64,000 nucleotides of DNA, taken from sequence record PP886230.1; one strand, written 5' to 3'. How positions within the stretch are numbered: the stretch's first letter is position 1; each line of letters begins with the position of its first letter. Made by a program: the position numbers and the translations under genes. Positions 12,100 to 61,097 of the stretch are shown piece by piece. The notes beneath the pieces were generated by a model. That model searched no databases and had not been told where the DNA came from. It saw only the letters and a list, made by a program, of their open reading frames with translations.

Positions 12100-12288
12100 A
12101 TGGAAAACTTATCAAGTATTTTAGTACAAGATGATTTCGGTAATCCTGGAAGTGCTATCATTGTTCGGGGTAATAAAGCAACGTTTGTTATTGCTGGTGG
12201 ACCAGTACAGCGTAGCATTAAAAATAATGCTGTTACCATTAATAATGTACGCTATCGCTTAGATAAAGAATTGATTCATAAACTGTAA
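12100..12288 (+). CDS. hypothetical early protein
   Basis: promoter cassette. Confidence 0.75.
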   Translation: MENLSSILVQDDFGNPGSAIIVRGNKATFVIAGGPVQRSIKNNAVTINNVRYRLDKELIHKL

Positions 12289-12315
12289 TATTAATTTAAT
12301 AGAGGATAACAATAA

Positions 12316-12639
12316 ATGTACATTCATACTACTATCACAAAGGAAGTCCGTTGCCAGTTCGAAAGTATTCCGGGCGTATGTTTCATCACTGGTACGTTTT
12401 CCCCTGGTGATCGTGATAATCCAGTACTGTTACAATTACGCCATCCATCATGGGATAAAGCATTTGATCTACCGTTGAATGAATTCGCAACTACTGCTGA
12501 AAAGTACATTAAAAATATTCGCGAGAATGATCGACTATTCATTAATGCTTTTAGTGATTCCGCGTTAAGCGAGATCCACGGCGTATTGGTTGCAATCATG
12601 GAATCAATGCAGAAAACTAAATTCAAACAAGGTGAATAA
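12316..12639 (+). CDS. hypothetical protein
   Basis: GAGG RBS. Confidence 0.75.
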   Translation: MYIHTTITKEVRCQFESIPGVCFITGTFSPGDRDNPVLLQLRHPSWDKAFDLPLNEFATTAEKYIKNIRENDRLFINAFSDSALSEIHGVLVAIMESMQKTKFKQGE

Positions 12640-33993: not shown

Positions 33994-34015
33994 TGTATGA
34001 TTATGTGATGGTATA

Positions 34016-34183
34016 ATGCTGATGAAAGAGTTATTTGAAGATCAGTTCAATACATATGTGGATAATATTCTTTATTCCAGCCGTGCTAGTCAACGAGGAA
34101 ATCGTGCTTACAATATAGATTACCTATTAGTGGTGCTGAGTTCACAGTACACCTACGCTGTACAGAGGACATATTATGAATAA
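34016..34183 (+). CDS. small hypothetical protein (55 aa)
   Basis: overlaps next start; below track cutoff. Confidence 0.5.
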   Translation: MLMKELFEDQFNTYVDNILYSSRASQRGNRAYNIDYLLVVLSSQYTYAVQRTYYE

Positions 34184-34379
34184 TTTTAGAGATGTTGCTA
34201 AGGAGAAGTTCAAGTGCAGTTTAGATTTTGGGTTAAATGATTTTCTGACATGCACAATGTACAGGAATGATGATTATGAGCAATCCGTAATTTCGTTGCA
34301 CAGATATTTCGAAATAATTTACGCAAGATATCTTAGAAGGTTAGAGGGAATAGGGGATTGGAATTATGATTACGTTTGA
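34176..34379 (+). CDS. hypothetical protein
   Basis: GAGG RBS, coupled. Confidence 0.7.
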   Translation: MNNFRDVAKEKFKCSLDFGLNDFLTCTMYRNDDYEQSVISLHRYFEIIYARYLRRLEGIGDWNYDYV

Positions 34380-34590
34380 AGAGCCGGAAGTGGCATATTG
34401 CTTTAGTGTGAAAGGTTTTGAATTCATGATGGATTCTATTTTGAAGGATACATATTTGGTTCAGATTGCAGTTGCAGATAATACAGATAATGCATTACAG
34501 CGAGTATTGAATATATACGAGAGGACGAGTCGAAGGCTTTGTGCAATGAAAAGGATTGAAGAAATCAAGGTTTCTAGGCTGAATAAATAG
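34366..34590 (+). CDS. hypothetical protein
   Basis: coupled. Confidence 0.7.
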   Translation: MITFEEPEVAYCFSVKGFEFMMDSILKDTYLVQIAVADNTDNALQRVLNIYERTSRRLCAMKRIEEIKVSRLNK

Positions 34591-34788
34591 AGACGTTTCG
34601 TTTTGACAGGCCGCAGGGGGGGGTCAAAAAAATTTCCGCTGAAAAACATGCTAAGGTATATGTTTAATATAAAGTTTTATATTGTGTTTTTCAGAGTACA
34701 GTTCATGTTTCTTGAAACAAAAAATACCCCGCCGCCGAACGTTCTCCTTATATTGGAGTTTACCTTATTAATTATAGTAGAGATTAAG

Positions 34789-54437: not shown

Positions 54438-55283
54438 ATGGATACAACAGATTTTCGTAATTTCAAAAAGTATTCAGTACTTGAACATATCAACGAATTT
54501 CTGAATTCCCCAACACCATTTGGTATCAGTACATCAGATACATACGATGGATATAGAATCTTCCCATGCAATGACTTTCAAATTTCTGTCAAAAAAGGTA
54601 CTTCAAAAGAAGTTGCAATTCGTGATGTAGTAATGTATAGCGATTCTTCTATTTATTACTGTCATGATGTGAACAAGTTTGAATCTCTTGCAACACCTAA
54701 TTGTTCATACTACAAATCACATGACACGATGATGTATAAAGAACAACATATCAATGGTGTTTCGTTCTATAAAACTAGCAGTGATAAATCATATACATCT
54801 AGAGATGATTTTGGAAAATACACATGTACTATGCACACGGATAATGAAAAAACAAATTACACTCATTCATTCGAGTCCAAATTCCAAGAGAGTGAAGTTT
54901 CAAATATCACTATACAAGAACAGGTTTCAGAAGGCATTGTATATCGTAGCACTGCATTCTTTCGCATGAAAGATATTGCCACAGGCAGACCAATGATGTA
55001 CAATATTGATATATACATGAAAGGTGATATATCCGAAATAGTGATTAGTACTGGTTATCGTGAAAAATATACAGTTACAATGGAATCACCAGATGCATCA
55101 TTAGTTCACCTCTTTAACAATTTATATACATTCCAATTCGAACTTAGTTTCGATCCAAATGAATATCAAATATTTGATATATTAAAAAGTAATATTATTA
55201 ATAAGTTAGAATATTACTACAAGTTAGGTGGTAAGATGTGCATAGTTAATACTATGTTACATAACATAAAAGAAACATTATAA
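54438..55283 (+). CDS. hypothetical protein
   Basis: AGGAG RBS, 281 aa. Confidence 0.8.
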   Translation: MDTTDFRNFKKYSVLEHINEFLNSPTPFGISTSDTYDGYRIFPCNDFQISVKKGTSKEVAIRDVVMYSDSSIYYCHDVNKFESLATPNCSYYKSHDTMMYKEQHINGVSFYKTSSDKSYTSRDDFGKYTCTMHTDNEKTNYTHSFESKFQESEVSNITIQEQVSEGIVYRSTAFFRMKDIATGRPMMYNIDIYMKGDISEIVISTGYREKYTVTMESPDASLVHLFNNLYTFQFELSFDPNEYQIFDILKSNIINKLEYYYKLGGKMCIVNTMLHNIKETL

Positions 55284-55299
55284 ATCTGGAGGATTTGGT

Positions 55300-55593
55300 A
55301 TGGATACTAAATTCAAAATTATTTTTAAAACTAAGCCGTATATTCCACATACCGCAGAACGTTTTATACCACATGGTGCTGAGGAAATTATTCACCAAGA
55401 TGGTACTAAGTTATACCTTGTTCCTTGTTCTTATGAACGTGCAGTAGAAATGTTACTAATGAATGCTAGACTATGCAAAAACAAGTACATTAGTTACCTA
55501 TACAATGAACATATTTTAGATTTCAATGATGAAAATATGTTCATTCTAGCAATCGAGGATTTTGATAACTGGTACAATATTATTAAAATCTAA
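55300..55593 (+). CDS. hypothetical protein
   Basis: GGAGG RBS. Confidence 0.8.
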   Translation: MDTKFKIIFKTKPYIPHTAERFIPHGAEEIIHQDGTKLYLVPCSYERAVEMLLMNARLCKNKYISYLYNEHILDFNDENMFILAIEDFDNWYNIIKI

Positions 55594-55664
55594 TGAAAAT
55601 AATGTGAACATATTAGATTCTTGTGATATAATGTTCACATCTTTTTTTGATAACGGAGATATAG

Positions 55665-56051
55665 ATGAATACAAGTTCAATCCTAAAAGCAATTGGTGGT
55701 GTTTTACTCATTGAAGTAAAAGGTGAGCCAAAGCTATGCTGTTTAGAAGATATGAAGAATACAAAACACTTCAGTACTGGTCAGATTTTCAATGCCATTC
55801 GTATTCTAAATGACAAATCCATTGCTGATTATGGAAAAGTTTGGCCTGTATATCAAAATGCTGATGGTGATATCAGTACTGATTGGAAAACAATTGAGGC
55901 GGTACGACAAAGTTGTGAGAGTGATTGGGACTTCATTGTTGAAGTTTGTGATCAACTACAAGAAGATGTTCCAGAAATTGTCGAACGAAAAGAAGTCCTA
56001 TCACGACTTGAAAAATTCCGTCACGGAACACTACAGTATGACACAATCTAA
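55665..56051 (+). CDS. hypothetical protein
   Basis: promoter and GGAG RBS. Confidence 0.8.
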   Translation: MNTSSILKAIGGVLLIEVKGEPKLCCLEDMKNTKHFSTGQIFNAIRILNDKSIADYGKVWPVYQNADGDISTDWKTIEAVRQSCESDWDFIVEVCDQLQEDVPEIVERKEVLSRLEKFRHGTLQYDTI

Positions 56052-56100
56052 TCTGCTTATTAAAAATATCTAATTAACATTATATAAAAGGAATTTAAAA

Positions 56101-56406
56101 ATGGAAGACAATGGAATGAAATTTGATATGTTTGAAGGTGTACCAGAGTTCGATTTCAACAAACTTGAAGAAGGTGAGGAATCAGAACTAGTCAGTGTTA
56201 CACTTAAAGCAGATTCTAAGAAGAAATATTCATCAGCAGTACGTTCACGTTCACAAGAAGAATACGAAACATTTATTGAAAGTATTCATTATGAAACATT
56301 CCATCATGCAGATGGAACTCCATATGAAGTACGTGTAACAGTGCTGAAGCCTGAAGTAAATCCAATGGAAAATCTACGTCCTGTTTACTGCTGGGCAAGT
56401 CACTAA
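56101..56406 (+). CDS. acidic hypothetical protein
   Basis: AAGGAA RBS; terminator at 56413-56445. Confidence 0.8.
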   Translation: MEDNGMKFDMFEGVPEFDFNKLEEGEESELVSVTLKADSKKKYSSAVRSRSQEEYETFIESIHYETFHHADGTPYEVRVTVLKPEVNPMENLRPVYCWASH

Positions 56407-56457
56407 TAAACCAAAGGACGGGATTTGTTATCTCGTCCTTTTTTTATCTGGAGATGT

Positions 56458-57312
56458 ATGAAACTTTATCTAATCGTTGACTACAATAAGGATTATGCTG
56501 GTAACTTCACCGAAGATTCGGATGGATATTGCACATCGACTAATGTCAATGTACGTATCAGTAATGCTCATGAACATGAATCTTGTAAAAATCTAAAAGA
56601 TTTTATCACATACCGAGCATTTGAAAAGAACTTCTGCCGCAGTAGATATTCGAAGTTTGAGTACCCGTTAATTGATGTTCCTGATGATTTAATGTTCCAG
56701 TTAATGCTAACTGGAGTTCAAGATTATGATTACATAGCATATAATCATATTACTAAGAAAATTTATATTGGTACATCATCACATGACACTTCTATGTATG
56801 CATCATGCCCAGATGATCGAATGAATGATAGAAAATCATACTATAGTGGATCAGTTGGTTTAAATGATTCATTAAATGAAAATTTATTCTTTGAGTATGT
56901 TTATGATTACCATCATGAGAAAAAAGAACGTGAAGATTACTGTATAGCAATTGATAGTACTAATGGGTATGAAGACGTGAAAGAAGCACTTATGCCGTAC
57001 ATTATTGAAAAGTACTACAAAGATTTTCAGTACTGTAGTAATTTTCTAATCAGAAATTCTATTATAATCGGTCGCCAATCTAGTGCATACTCTCAGTACT
57101 ATAATGATTCACCAGTAGCATCGGCAAATGAAATGTGTGATATTTTACAAATTCCACGTGAAGATATGGCATTCATTTTTACATCTTTTATTGAAGATGA
57201 TGAGTTGTATATTAAAAATAAACACCGTTTCATGCCAAGCAAGATTGAGGTTATTCGAAGTTTTAGTGTTGATATACTAACAAATTTCACAGAAAAAACC
57301 GAATATAACTGA
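56458..57312 (+). CDS. hypothetical protein with one family B-like motif
   Basis: DDLMFQLML; start moved from 56425. Confidence 0.8.
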   Translation: MKLYLIVDYNKDYAGNFTEDSDGYCTSTNVNVRISNAHEHESCKNLKDFITYRAFEKNFCRSRYSKFEYPLIDVPDDLMFQLMLTGVQDYDYIAYNHITKKIYIGTSSHDTSMYASCPDDRMNDRKSYYSGSVGLNDSLNENLFFEYVYDYHHEKKEREDYCIAIDSTNGYEDVKEALMPYIIEKYYKDFQYCSNFLIRNSIIIGRQSSAYSQYYNDSPVASANEMCDILQIPREDMAFIFTSFIEDDELYIKNKHRFMPSKIEVIRSFSVDILTNFTEKTEYN

Positions 57313-57339
57313 GACAAATGATAAGTTAATGATATAATA

Positions 57340-57374
57340 TAAGGTGACAACATAATATGTTAGTCACCTTTTTT
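57340..57374 (+). terminator. bidirectional terminator-like hairpin
   Basis: AAGGTGAC-AACAT/ATGTT-A-GTCACCTT-TTTTT. Confidence 0.65.
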
Positions 57375-57890
57375 TAATCCTGAAAGGTTCCCATAAGGAA
57401 ATGATTAAAAGCCTAATCCACTCGAAAATGTAGAGGGTAGATGAGTAGTCCTTTCAGTACGAACAGCAGATGAAACCCGTTAGATGATGGCATAGTTTGA
57501 ACCACTCACGGCAATGCGGCTGTATAAAGAACTCCAATAGGATAAAGAGAGTTCCTCGATAGACATATAAGGATCGCACCTTACCAATTATCTAAGGGAG
57601 ATTTCATAAGAAATATGCGGTCGGAATTATACAATATAGTTGCGTCCAAATTTTGTGAAATCAAATACAAGTACTGGTCATATGGTATTTGTATTATGTG
57701 TCGGGATGTTTAAGACCGACGACCGTTGCTACAAGAACCGCGATAGAGAGAAACAGAGCAACCCGCTTTCGTCTCGTAAGAGAATTCGTGATATGAACTA
57801 TGTGAAGGCCACCAGCGTCAAACTTTTTTGTTCTTTCCCCTGCGGGGGGATGAAATATGCTCAAGCAAACCCCGTCAATATTAATTAAAA
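57375..57890 (+). ncRNA. ~500-nt structured non-coding island (large ncRNA candidate)
   Basis: visibly higher GC than flanks; several helices; no RBS-led ORF; strand assumed. Confidence 0.45.
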
Positions 57891-57990
57891 GAAAATAGTA
57901 CTTGTAGAATTAGACATGCGTAGCATGGTAATTCTACTGATGTTGATGAAATCAACGTCACGTATATTCATTGATGTTTCCATAGGAATA

Positions 57991-58536
57991 ATGATGGCAT
58001 TTATTAGAAAACAAAAAACTTTTACCTATAAGACTTTGGATTTTGTTGATTGTGAAAACCAATTACAAGATGAAGATAACTTTACAGGATTTGTTGTTAT
58101 TAAAGAAAAAGGATGCATTTCTTACATAAAGGAATTACAGAACGGCATTGAAGTTACTTCAGTCAAATTACTTCCTACACAAAAACCAACAATATTAAAA
58201 GCACAGTATGGTAATTATTTCGAGGAAAGATATAGTAATAATTTAATAAGTGTTAAGGCTTATATTATAAAAGGAGAACTAGAAGGAGAATATAGAAAAT
58301 ACAACCCACAAGGAAAATGTGTTTGGGTTAAATACTTCAATTCAGGAAATGATGTAACATCTGAAATAATTGAGTTTTTAGGTTTAACATGTACCCCTGA
58401 AACTCTTCATGATTACAAATTTAATACTGAAGAAGAGTTTAATCTGATGATGCGTTATGGTTCACATTTTAAATTTTTGTATGAATATAACATTGACAGT
58501 AGTACTTTTGATAAGATAGTACAGAACTGTCTATAA
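57991..58536 (+). CDS. hypothetical protein with a MORN/YwqK-like repeat
   Basis: GELEGEYRKYNPQGK; start moved from 57916. Confidence 0.6.
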   Translation: MMAFIRKQKTFTYKTLDFVDCENQLQDEDNFTGFVVIKEKGCISYIKELQNGIEVTSVKLLPTQKPTILKAQYGNYFEERYSNNLISVKAYIIKGELEGEYRKYNPQGKCVWVKYFNSGNDVTSEIIEFLGLTCTPETLHDYKFNTEEEFNLMMRYGSHFKFLYEYNIDSSTFDKIVQNCL

Positions 58537-58552
58537 CAAAAGGATTTATAAC

Positions 58553-59074
58553 ATGTCGAAGAAGGATACTTCGAACAAACATTCAGTACACTTCAGTACT
58601 GGTAAAGATAACTGGACAACTCCAAAAGATTTCTTTGAAGAGTTAGATGAGTTATGGGGATTTACGCTTGATGCTGCTTGTGTTGATGAGACTGCATTAT
58701 GTGAGAATTATTTTACACCAAATGATGATTCTCTTTCACAGGATTGGGGAAAGAATATAGTTTGGTTGAACCCTCCATATAGTGATTTGAAAACATGGTT
58801 ATCTAAAGCAGTAGATGCGTATAATAAAGGGGCAACTGTATTAATTCTTGTACCATCAAGAACGGATACTATAGCTTTTCAGGATTATGCTGCGAAAGTT
58901 TGTGATTGTATTTGTTTTATTAAGGGAAGGTTACGATTTGGTATCCCAGAAGAACCAGAGAAGAAAACAGATTCAGCACCATTTCCTTCGTGTCTGATAG
59001 TACTAGATAAGTACTTAACCACTGCTAAAATCAATTATCTTAAATCTCTTGGATTGGTGATGAAGAATTTATGA
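58553..59074 (+). CDS. dam: DNA N6-adenine methyltransferase, phage T1/HP1 Dam-like family
   Basis: WTTPKDFF, FTLDAAC, DSLSQDW, VWLNPPYS (motif IV), LVPSRTDT; target sequence unknown. Confidence 0.9.
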   Translation: MSKKDTSNKHSVHFSTGKDNWTTPKDFFEELDELWGFTLDAACVDETALCENYFTPNDDSLSQDWGKNIVWLNPPYSDLKTWLSKAVDAYNKGATVLILVPSRTDTIAFQDYAAKVCDCICFIKGRLRFGIPEEPEKKTDSAPFPSCLIVLDKYLTTAKINYLKSLGLVMKNL

Positions 59075-59604
59075 AAGAAACATGTATATTATCATTTATG
59101 AGATGTAACCCAGTCCACAATGGTCATGGTTTAGTTTTTGAAAAGGCCAAAACATTACAAGAACAGTACAATGCAGATTTGAAAATATATCTAAGCACCA
59201 GTACTGATAATATAAAAAACCCGCTTCCTCCTGAATTAAAGATGTATTACACTGAGGGTTTCTATCCTTCGGTTCAAGAAAACATTTATACTGAAGATAA
59301 TCTTTTTGATATAATGCGTGAATTAGATGGAAAATATTTAGATGTATTTTTTATATGTGGTTCAGACCGTATTGATTCTTTTCAGAAAACACTTGACAGT
59401 TACAATGGGAAGTTGTATAATTTTTGTAATATAAAAGCAATTCAAGCAGGTATTGACCGCCAATCAAGTCAATATAGCTCAACACAAATGCGTAACTTCG
59501 CAAAAAATGAAGATTTTGATAGTTTTCGTGAGTTTTTACCTGGAAATGACGAGGACTTAAAAATACAATTATTTGAAGACGTTATAAAATACATGAGGAA
59601 ATAA
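59071..59604 (+). CDS. HIGH-superfamily nucleotidyltransferase (cytidyltransferase/NMNAT-like)
   Basis: RCNPVHNGH (HxGH), NPL, CGSDR, YSSTQMR. Confidence 0.85.
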   Translation: MKETCILSFMRCNPVHNGHGLVFEKAKTLQEQYNADLKIYLSTSTDNIKNPLPPELKMYYTEGFYPSVQENIYTEDNLFDIMRELDGKYLDVFFICGSDRIDSFQKTLDSYNGKLYNFCNIKAIQAGIDRQSSQYSSTQMRNFAKNEDFDSFREFLPGNDEDLKIQLFEDVIKYMRK

Positions 59605-59606
59605 TT

Positions 59607-59900
59607 ATGTCAGTACTGTTCAAAACCAATCCAGTACTTTGGGATCAAAATGAGCAATCAGGATTTCGTTCCATCCATGTTGAATACAAAGGTAATACTG
59701 TAGTTGCAATTATTGCTAACAAAACTCTAGGAAACTGGACTGCACAGGTTGTTCCTATGGGATATTCTTACACATCTGATGAGGTTCAATTCCTGGCTGA
59801 ACTATATCGTCAAGTGCCGTTTATCATTAATGTACTAGAAGGTAATGATACATTATCACATGCAGATGTGATTAATTTTCTTGGAAACTTGCATGTGTGA
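59607..59900 (+). CDS. hypothetical protein
   Basis: GAGG RBS. Confidence 0.75.
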   Translation: MSVLFKTNPVLWDQNEQSGFRSIHVEYKGNTVVAIIANKTLGNWTAQVVPMGYSYTSDEVQFLAELYRQVPFIINVLEGNDTLSHADVINFLGNLHV

Positions 59901-60180
59901 TGAAATAAATCTTACAGGATATTTTTTACAAGAATCAATGATTAAATTTAGTGATAAATTTTCAGTACTGGATGGTATCGAAATGTGGCATGTCAAACCA
60001 CTGTTCCACACTTTCAGTAAAGAGCACAAAATGTTATTGACTGAAGCCAGTAAATCAAATAACATATGTGAAATCAAAATTGGTGTAAATGTCTATAAAG
60101 GGATGGTTATCTTTTTTGACAATAACAGCAACTACTTTTATATTGTTAAGGAGCATTACGTTGACAAATACAAATACTAA
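59893..60180 (+). CDS. hypothetical protein
   Basis: coupled. Confidence 0.7.
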   Translation: MCDEINLTGYFLQESMIKFSDKFSVLDGIEMWHVKPLFHTFSKEHKMLLTEASKSNNICEIKIGVNVYKGMVIFFDNNSNYFYIVKEHYVDKYKY

Positions 60181-60775
60181 TACATACTTCCGTTATCTTC
60201 GCTTAGGTCTTTCCCTACGTCCGATCCGTGGAAAGTGCGATTCACTCGCTGACCTTGACTATGCATATGCATTACATCATGAAGGTGTACAGTATGTATT
60301 GGGTGATTATGGTGAATTTGAAGAAACAAATGACAGTACTGGAATTAATGCTGGTGTAGAAAATCTTAACAACATTGCTAACAGTTCTCGCCATGACATT
60401 GTGTTACAGATTCAAAACTTTATTGAGCAACACACAGGCAAACGTGTTTGGTGCTATGTCGGTACTGATGCACAAATGTCAATTTCATTCGGTAACGATG
60501 AAGGATATGTTGCACAGCTTATTATGGATTTTGAATCTGAAGAGAAGTTTTTAGAATTCAAAGAAAAGATTATTCAGTCACTTGTTGATATGGGTATCCC
60601 CGAAGATAAAATGCCAGAAGTCCAAAACATTGATGAATTTGTTTTGATTCCATCTGATGAGAAATATGATGCAATGTTTACTGCTCTTAATATTCCAGGA
60701 GTTATTGTGGAGTACTTTGATGATGGTGATGATAGTATCTATATCGATCTAGATGACGATGACGACGATGAATAA
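60161..60775 (+). CDS. acidic hypothetical protein (TTG start)
   Basis: AAGGAG RBS; terminator at 60781-60809. Confidence 0.75.
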   Translation: MTNTNTNTYFRYLRLGLSLRPIRGKCDSLADLDYAYALHHEGVQYVLGDYGEFEETNDSTGINAGVENLNNIANSSRHDIVLQIQNFIEQHTGKRVWCYVGTDAQMSISFGNDEGYVAQLIMDFESEEKFLEFKEKIIQSLVDMGIPEDKMPEVQNIDEFVLIPSDEKYDAMFTALNIPGVIVEYFDDGDDSIYIDLDDDDDDE

Positions 60776-60821
60776 TGTACATAGCCCGACATAAGTTCGG
60801 GCTATTTTTGTAAGGGGATAT

Positions 60822-61097
60822 ATGAATTATAAAGTTCTACAATATACATACAGTGTTTTGTTTGATTTACATCACAATGGAAGATATCTCAATACAATAC
60901 GAGAAAACACATTCACTCATACTATCTGGATTAATCACTTAATAATGATACGTGAATATTTTGTTAATAGTGAGATAATCATTCGTGGTAAAAAACAGAA
61001 GATAGAACAAGTTAATAGTTTTGGTGGTAAATTAGTACTATCATTTATAGATAGTAATACTAATGAAAGATATAGTATAGATTTGGTGGACATATGA
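60822..61097 (+). CDS. family C paralog
   Basis: LQYTYSVLFDL. Confidence 0.8.
   Translation: MNYKVLQYTYSVLFDLHHNGRYLNTIRENTFTHTIWINHLIMIREYFVNSEIIIRGKKQKIEQVNSFGGKLVLSFIDSNTNERYSIDLVDI

Follow-up and report, generated by a model that had tools for sequence, protein, structure and literature searches.

A candidate gene for a large structured RNA, present in four diverged copies in the jumbo phage vB_EcoM_E9.1

The locus, its promoter and its transcripts

The stretch of DNA analysed here (the window) comprises bases 1–64000 of Escherichia phage vB_EcoM_E9.1 (PP886230.1, 367,851 bp), a 121Q/PBECO4-like, RaK2-like jumbo phage, and our subject is an element at 57.31–57.94 kb that an initial annotation, made from the sequence, had put forward as a candidate large non-coding RNA (ncRNA). 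The general marks of a structured ncRNA are all present, namely compensatory pairing beyond that of controls, a promoter of its own, the lack of a conserved open reading frame (ORF) and contigs from RNA libraries; these support the proposal, and we regard the region with high confidence as a genuine structured RNA gene. It is copy A (57376–57890) of four paralogues, all on the plus strand of the genome, the others being copy B (~111975–112552), copy C (~190765–191273) and copy D (~302384–302874).

Annotated genes stop at 57312, the next GenBank gene begins at 57994 and the next longest-ORF start lies at 57916, with no ORF of at least 90 amino acids (aa) across 57313–57915. This gap, singled out at the outset as long and non-coding, is indeed among the two longest of its kind within ~26–64 kb of the window; longer ones exist in the first 26 kb, because the genes there are short. 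The raised guanine-cytosine (GC) content noted at the same time is equally clear, at 0.41–0.445 across 57400–57899 (windows of 200 nucleotides, nt) versus 0.27–0.33 in the flanks, and the RNA element as a whole has a GC content of 0.41 compared with 0.342 for the whole window.

The TTG-initiated ORF that had been picked out at 57640 exists (57640–57888, plus strand, 82 codons) and is not conserved in relatives. Across 43 relatives, the longest stop-free stretch has a median of 55 aa on the plus strand and 68 aa on the minus strand versus 57 aa in shuffled sequences, the stop-free stretches shift in position, and insertions and deletions are not multiples of three and are located in hairpin tips. 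The family is non-coding, and the 57640 ORF arose by chance. In GenBank, four non-conserved minus-strand ORFs of 29–56 codons (CDS0168–0171, 57413–57983) span the RNA gene and equivalent tiny ORFs are annotated at copies B, C and D, each copy lying in a gap with only such ORFs; other GenBank records leave the RNA locus empty. The small ORFs annotated over the RNA copies are most likely annotation artefacts, which would allow several spurious ‘hypothetical protein’ calls to be removed from dozens of GenBank records.

Upstream of the core, a predicted sigma-70-type promoter occupies 57311–57338 of the plus strand (GAGACA, 16 nt, TG-extended TATAAT; 10 of 12 matches, TG present). The extended −10 already noticed near 57330 is its TGATATAAT box at 57330–57338, with GAGACA 16 nt upstream of the box. 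Every phage copy is headed by G(A/G)(A/G)ACA, 16–17 nt and TGnTATAAT, with equivalent promoters upstream of copies B and C, and the arrangement is kept in an alignment of 43 sequences and in bacterial copies; each copy is thus predicted to have its own strong host-type promoter, of the sigma-70 type with an extended −10. In copy A, a plus-strand hairpin, GGTGACAAC/GTTAGTCACC, followed by U7 (57343–57375), separates the −10 box from the conserved core. A terminator is annotated at the matching position in phage G17, and a hairpin with U6–7 directly after the −10 box is kept in A-type paralogues of several other genera. The hairpin either terminates the upstream gene or belongs to copy A as its 5′ leader. 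It resembles a terminator a few bases past the start site; attenuation, protection of the 5′ end or simply termination of the upstream gene are possible roles.

Evidence of transcription comes from four public sequencing runs, compared over 55001–60900. In two wastewater metatranscriptomes and one RNA-seq run, contigs cover ~57409–57924 at a depth of 6–17, and the 5.4 kb of flanking genes have a depth of ~0 in RNA runs X2 and X10 and sparse, low cover in X9; a DNA-like run (X1) covers element and flanks alike. The loose ends of the RNA-library contigs belong to copies B and D, and one metatranscriptome contig spans 57748–57924 and ends there. This pattern fits an abundant, stable RNA, and the presence of a transcript is supported rather than proven. 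An AT-rich spacer with a hairpin at 57904–57937 makes up 57886–57940 of the plus strand, and both its sequence and the contig that stops at 57924 mark this as the probable 3′ end region of the copy A transcript. Near-consensus sigma-70 promoters (TTGACA/TTGACT, 17 nt, TAGAAT/TACAAT) directly follow the RNA tail in several copies, some with a small hairpin in the spacer, and the downstream early genes therefore have promoters of their own.

Comparative support for the fold

We collected ~150 copies of the RNA, of which 74 that are less than 95% identical, from phages, metagenomes and bacteria, were used for pair counts. These 74 sequences were aligned blind to structure, with a profile hidden Markov model (HMM) and then hmmalign; an earlier version held 43 sequences. 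At least 13 helices and 4–5 pseudoknots are supported by compensatory change across the family. All five helices named in the initial annotation (P5, P8, P9, P10 and P15 below) are present in copy A where it had placed them, and each is retained across relatives. Pairing is canonical in 93–100% of cases in the well-supported helices, and in 85, 86 and 84% in P9, P13 and P15, respectively; in the blind alignment, sliding the partners by 1–3 columns leaves only 40–65% canonical in the well-supported helices, and each helix holds between 33 and 168 double-change cells. In the well-supported helices, G·U is much commoner than A·C (126 versus 9 in P8, 43 versus 0 in P12 and 20 versus 1 in P11), which singles out the plus strand as the one that folds and speaks for RNA.

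Covariance-model alignments were also made of the two halves of the molecule. For the 3′ domain (alignment A5), 99.4% of cells are paired, compared with 79.8% in shuffles and 34–46% with slid partners; there are 358 double-change cells versus 87 in shuffles, and the covariation score is 0.62 versus 0.22, with none of 500 shuffles scoring as high. For the 5′ domain (A7), 99.1% of cells are paired, compared with 73.9% in shuffles and 30–42% when slid, with double changes at 17 of 21 pairs and a covariation score of 0.615 versus 0.147 in shuffles. Both alignments are fitted to the structure, a bias against which the structure-blind alignment guards.

The 5′ domain of copy A (57376–57528, on the plus strand like every feature below) consists of P1, P1a, P2, stem Y, P3 and P4. 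P1 joins 57380–87 to 57450–57 (98% canonical in the 74 sequences) and is followed by the P1a hairpin (57388–91 with 57397–400, 96%) and by the P2 hairpin at 57413–40, which carries the conserved loop GAAAAUGUA. Stem Y, with three pairs (57445–47 with 57458–60, 100%), closes a loop containing the 3′ strand of P1 and thereby creates a pseudoknot. P3 (57463–67 with 57519–23) is canonical in 100% of cases and P4 (57477–80 with 57508–11) in 99.7%, the insert of P4 occurring in two alternative forms among the copies.

The central domain (57529–57697) contains P5–P8, long-range pairs and the invariant junctions CUCGAUAGACAUAU and CUAAGGGAG. P5, GAACTC/GAGTTC (57529–34 with 57549–54), is 93–97% canonical with compensatory changes at six of six pairs, P6 (57568–72 with 57579–83) is 95% canonical, and P8, AATACAAGTAC/GTATTTGTATT (57664–74 with 57685–95), is 94% canonical. 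P7 (57600–07 with 57655–62) is a hairpin of variable length, ranging from a GAAA-capped mini-hairpin up to 60 nt. A long-range AUG/CAU helix joins 57514–16 to 57564–66, in which G57516–C57564 becomes A–U in 15 of the 74 sequences with no break in pairing, and the P5 loop (57538–44) probably pairs with 57589–94, a pairing that can be seen by eye in several lineages, although its support in the automatic alignment is weaker (61%).

In the 3′ domain (57698–57823), defined from RNAalifold counts and the covariance model, P9–P14 are combined with a pseudoknot of the P8 loop. P9, GTCGG/CCGAC (57700–04 with 57716–20, 85% canonical), precedes P10, GTTGC/GCAAC (57725–29 with 57758–62, 100%), which crosses both P11 (57739–43 with 57786–90, 99%) and P12 (57746–50 with 57766–70, 100%) to form a pseudoknot; P13 (57772–75 with 57780–83) is 86% canonical. 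The P8 loop pairs at 57677–83 with 57791–97 (94% canonical, seven of seven pairs covarying). RNAalifold also proposed a helix between GAC 57721–23 and GUC 57817–19, which is invariant and hence neither supported nor refuted, and which competes with P14; we did not retain it.

Between the helices lie invariant single-stranded blocks, namely GAUGAG, AUAAAG, CUCGAUAGACAUAU, CUAAGGGAG, GAAACAGA, CCCG and AAUUC. A conserved module of ~35 nt, UUUUGUACAAUAUAGAUCCGUCCAAAAUU, which contains the palindrome UGUACA and occurs in the 57413–57662 region of the window and in other copies, caps P7 in some copies and P13 in others. It caps both in copy B and in a copy from an Escherichia coli island (positions 12180–12460 of the NZ_AP027515.1 3467139–3491515 stretch), and in this it appears to behave like a movable peripheral element, as in large folded RNAs.

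The 3′ end of the RNA carries two versions of the motif AYCNYCGUCAR. The first (57810–21) forms the 3′ side of P14 (57804–57821), a small hairpin of the form GAYGA...UCGUC; beyond it, 57824–57885 takes in a U-run (57824–29), the P15 hairpin of a C-run and a G-run (57831–40 with 57845–54, 84% canonical, variation mainly G·U) and the second motif (57868–57879), whose hairpin, GAUGA...UCGUC, uses the P15 3′ strand. The twin motifs vary in step, with U/U in 49 sequences, C/C in 25 and mixed in none. A change of CGUC to UGUC appears in both together, and in one Serratia copy both motifs have GAC in place of GUC, while the two 5′ strands have changed to match. We found no partner covarying with the motifs beyond their own hairpin strands. 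Such concerted change in the sequences points to one partner reading both motifs, or to two equivalent processing sites; a single partner probably has a site in each of the twin 3′ hairpins.

In most copies P14 is followed by a terminator-like hairpin and a U-run, which in copy C score as a terminator and which are absent in copies A and D. P15 with its flanks (57831–57866) is the only part of the RNA with a repeatable Rfam match, to CRISPR-DR57, a match far below threshold (15.5 bits, E 0.35 on 101 nt, against a gathering score of 39); a CRISPR-DR57-like hairpin also lies in the E. coli island copy, at 12491–12529 of the same stretch. The UUCCCC...GGGGAU.AA of the P15 region also resembles the type I-E repeat of the clustered regularly interspaced short palindromic repeats (CRISPR) system, a possible lead towards an RNA anti-CRISPR role.

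Paralogues, phages and bacterial islands

A repeat search inside the window finds copy A only, as B, C and D lie outside it, and a profile HMM at E <1e-5 finds exactly four copies across the E9.1 genome and nothing else. The only other ~600-nt gap without an ORF of at least 90 aa in the gene-dense part of the window, 33994–34602, does not match the RNA profile. The four paralogues are mutually 68–85% identical. The check for conservation in related jumbo phages that had been suggested from the start returned, by BLAST, 4–5 matching places per record: in the phage database, 62–72 records match, all RaK2-like jumbo phages, from Escherichia, Salmonella, Klebsiella, Cronobacter, Serratia, Yersinia, Erwinia, Pectobacterium and Xanthomonas hosts. 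Related genera have five copies, and RaK2 itself has a diverged, syntenic copy upstream of a dam methylase gene (88 and 73 bits with two covariance models, whose E-values are rough owing to a shortened calibration). Pattern scans added 89 metagenome loci and 51 IMG/VR loci, the latter all on contigs of ~350–378 kb or fragments; since the scans detect only relatives that retain the P10–P12 core, the true range may be wider.

In a tree of the 74 sequences (a quick FastTree, midpoint-rooted and without support values), each paralogue clade includes several phage genera, so that the duplications predate the genera, and the old paralogues are retained in every genus; a fifth paralogue clade is absent from the 121Q group. 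The four paralogues, the range of the family, the several pseudoknots and the hairpin with U-run between promoter and core had all been missed by the initial annotation.

The RNA is also present at eight loci in bacterial genomes, among them a complete Serratia fonticola chromosome, Silvania, Buttiauxella and Enterobacter chinensis. It occurs in 2 of 5,426 complete E. coli genomes. In the bacterial loci examined it always adjoins the recombinase of the element, which belongs to the large serine type at six loci and is a tyrosine integrase at three. Downstream of the RNA, most of these loci carry a divergent cI-like repressor gene, convergent to the RNA, and a cro-like gene. In S. fonticola, the RNA lies between two ParB/RepB-like genes and tilS. 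The island of E. coli LR-29-1 (~10.7 kb, in NZ_AP027515.1 3467139–3491515, between ffs and ybaA) contains, besides the RNA gene, part of an integrase split by IS3 and a DUF4326/DUF488/dual-OB trio, which corresponds to PDC-M45, a candidate defence system. No homologue of the island proteins was found beside any phage copy, and a PHROGs search with them was uninformative. In the tree, the E. coli island copy nests within a phage clade and the other bacterial copies, with some metagenomic sequences, form a clade of their own, which implies at least two exchanges between phages and islands.

Two further observations concern single records. A 2.8-kb contig of a ‘Clostridium sp.’ metagenome-assembled genome (DPOH01000171.1) is 93–95% identical to the Buttiauxella and Enterobacteriaceae island loci; probably it derives from an enterobacterium and was binned wrongly, and is not a clostridial copy. 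In PP886230.1 itself, some twelve genes with the annotation ‘regulator of chromosome condensation’ (RCC1-like) stand in tandem on the minus strand at 328–343 kb, and many paralogous genes of ~60 codons form a long array after them, at 343–347 kb.

Possible functions and comparison with known RNAs

The search of Rfam covariance models suggested in the initial annotation matched no family of Rfam 15 at its gathering score, either in the whole window or in the E. coli island copy; the families covered include ROOL, GOLLD, OLE, HEARO, raiA, ribonuclease (RNase) P, transfer-messenger RNA (tmRNA), 6S, group I/II introns and riboswitches. At E up to 10 on 57250–58050 there was noise only, of at most 27 bits and all under half the cut-off. 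ARAGORN found no transfer RNA (tRNA) or tmRNA in the window, and neither all-pairs helix scans nor mutual-information scans found an RNase P-type pairing of the two ends, so that the early failure to match the element to tmRNA, RNase P or group I/II introns agrees with these searches and with the layout of the helices. The CCCGCUUUC segment, which loosely recalls RNase P CR-V, pairs locally as P12 (100% support), and an RNase P-like reading of ACAGAGCAACCCGC was rejected, as the segment pairs locally and no covariance model matches. A group I/II intron was likewise rejected, the RNA being intergenic with its own promoter and without a covariance-model match; the order P10-P11-P12-P10′-P12′-P13-P11′ in the 3′ domain is unlike the P7-P3′-P8-P7′ of a group I core. 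A hammerhead-like reading of CAGAUGAG with GAAA failed because the helix order does not fit. Our searches of the literature on jumbo phages, ROOL/GOLLD and large ncRNAs with covariation yielded no published description of this RNA family, and in the GenBank records of E9.1, G17 and RaK2 and in summaries of BLAST hits the locus is empty or carries a terminator feature or small hypothetical ORFs.

We consider it probable that 57.31–57.94 kb encodes a highly structured ncRNA of ~0.5 kb that is transcribed on its own, as copy A of four, and that belongs to a trans-acting family found in RaK2-like jumbo phages and in rare integrase-bearing islands of Enterobacterales chromosomes. Host RNA polymerase would make the RNA from the start of infection, and in island-bearing cells it would be made constitutively; it would fold compactly, with the invariant junctions as a binding or active core, and would work in trans, either as a scaffold or decoy for a conserved host or phage factor or as a self-assembling particle like those of ROOL and GOLLD. 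Action in trans, as scaffold, decoy or particle, thus seems to us rather more probable than action in cis; it takes in catalysis, a less likely variant that we judge improbable on its own, and an anti-CRISPR or anti-defence decoy, which we judge more improbable still. No protein neighbour is common to phage copies and islands. More tentatively, the family might be a new class of ornate RNA with a biochemical activity of its own, either as a ribozyme or as a particle, of RNA or ribonucleoprotein, that assembles itself, with 4–5 specialised paralogues and at least two exchanges with islands. If this is true, these phages would deploy, within the first minutes after infection, a mobile RNA ‘organelle’ or weapon that comes without a protein gene.

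Several points weigh against our main reading. The single-sequence minimum free energy (MFE) is not exceptional (z-scores of −1.2 and −0.2 for the plus and minus strands, respectively); as single-sequence folding is not better than chance, the case rests on comparative evidence and not on helix counts. The terminator-like hairpin of most copies stands upstream of the conserved P15 and tail, which leaves room for a shorter mature RNA or for two products, and efficient termination at the 57343–57375 hairpin, if it occurs, would limit expression from the copy A promoter. The RNA evidence, finally, consists of contigs assembled from mixed environmental libraries, which may contain DNA and sum close relatives, rather than of mapped 5′ and 3′ ends.

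The main rival, which we regard as unlikely, is a cis-acting origin-primer transcript, a folded RNA that would form a persistent hybrid near the G-run and AT-rich DNA and prime the leading strand; the dispersed copies would serve the 350-kb genome as its multiple origins, and the islands would have borrowed one. Such a role would suit 4–5 copies dispersed round the genome in a single orientation, each with a strong early-type promoter and with a G6 run and then AT-rich sequence at its 3′ side, in a phage that encodes T4-like replication genes and RNase H; the Serratia copy beside two ParB/RepB-like genes and the want of a protein partner common to phages and islands point the same way. An origin primer fits less well with an RNA that accumulates as a stable species in RNA libraries, with a terminator-like hairpin placed upstream of the G-run in most copies, with the absence of any match among 72,556 plasmids, and with conserved single-stranded junctions and 4–5 pseudoknots, which in our judgement are more elaborate than expected.

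Catalysis is, as a rival in its own right, improbable to a similar degree: the core would process itself at the two CGUCAR motifs, or cleave or ligate another RNA. Size, pseudoknots and invariant junctions of this kind are expected of large ribozymes, the two identical 3′ motifs co-evolve, as would befit a pair of substrates for a single active site, and the phage carries RNA repair enzymes; yet the RNA is like no ribozyme family in Rfam, no internal guide covarying with the motifs was found, and a metatranscriptome contig spans both motifs. We are more doubtful of an anti-defence decoy, in which P15 would mimic a CRISPR repeat as an RNA anti-CRISPR or the whole RNA would titrate a host immune nuclease. 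The idea draws on an RNA common to lytic phages and mobile islands, one of these with the candidate PDC-M45, and on CRISPR-DR57 as the best, if sub-threshold, Rfam match of P15 and its flanks (15.5 bits), but that value falls well short of the gathering score (39), the P15 stem is shorter than I-E repeats, and a repeat mimic would not need 450 nt of conserved structure upstream.

A cis-regulatory leader, or a processive antiterminator of the put/EAR type, for downstream early genes is very unlikely. Copies A, B and D do share the order of promoter, structured RNA, terminator-like hairpin and plus-strand genes. Copy C, however, is on the plus strand and has minus-strand genes on either side, those that follow it being late genes, and therefore cannot be a leader of its neighbours; this setting, the convergent cI-like genes that follow the bacterial copies, the separate near-consensus promoters downstream of the element and the conserved junction sequences all argue against a leader, and the put and EAR elements known so far are several times smaller than this RNA. 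That the locus is no RNA gene at all, and instead a decayed protein gene, a set of small ORFs or a DNA site (pac, recombination or a protein-binding array), as the tiny ORFs in GenBank and the two 11-nt motifs, which are direct repeats, might suggest, we consider extremely unlikely given the lack of a conserved reading frame, the indels in hairpin tips that do not come in threes, the compensatory changes with strand-specific G·U that misfit double-stranded DNA sites, and the Serratia copy in which the 5′ strands of both 3′ hairpins have changed to match the altered motifs.

A structured RNA acting in trans remains our preferred reading, and it can be tested directly, as the well-studied and culturable E. 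coli phages 121Q, PBECO4, phAPEC6 and G17 carry the family. The ancient paralogues, the spread to islands and the concerted twin motifs invite the question of what an RNA alone does for a mobile element.

Large RNAs of bacteria or phages with so much conserved tertiary structure are rare; among those known are ribozymes (RNase P, introns), the cores of ribonucleoproteins (tmRNA, the signal recognition particle RNA, OLE) and RNA-only assemblies (ROOL, GOLLD). Among systems with a possible bearing on the E9.1 RNA, ColE1 RNA II and the T4 oriF/oriG transcripts are likewise promoter-driven, a few hundred nt long and possessed of a G-rich stretch near an AT-rich region, and the several copies in a T4-like replicating genome match the setting of oriF/oriG; unlike them, most copies of the E9.1 RNA have a terminator-like hairpin upstream of the G-run, and multi-pseudoknot cores are not known from origin transcripts. 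RNA anti-CRISPRs, which are solitary CRISPR-repeat units carried by phages and plasmids, share with it a short C/G hairpin with repeat-like flanks, carriage by phages or islands and a promoter of their own, but here the likeness is sub-threshold only and the hairpin forms the last tenth of a far larger conserved fold. OLE RNA, at ~600 nt, is highly conserved and structurally complex, and its biochemical function is not established (PMC12054373). The E9.1 RNA is similarly large, conserved and complex; OLE, however, is chromosomal, belongs to Bacillota and has dedicated protein partners encoded adjacent to it, whereas the E9.1 RNA family is borne by mobile elements, with no constant neighbour and no Rfam match.

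In lifestyle, the closest likeness is to ROOL and GOLLD, recovered from Lactobacillales and from rumen or lake samples. The E9.1 family matches their Rfam models neither in sequence nor in structure and differs from them in residing in Enterobacterales jumbo phages, in having 4–5 diverged paralogues per genome and in not lying beside tRNA clusters. It shares with them a length of at least ~0.5 kb, phage or prophage-like carriers, many helices with pseudoknots and no associated protein gene. ROOL and GOLLD are described in a preprint as forming RNA-only multimers (bioRxiv 10.1101/2024.12.08.627333). We rate the E9.1 RNA family as a new RNA class, within a broader category, that of large phage RNAs of unknown function, which has precedents.

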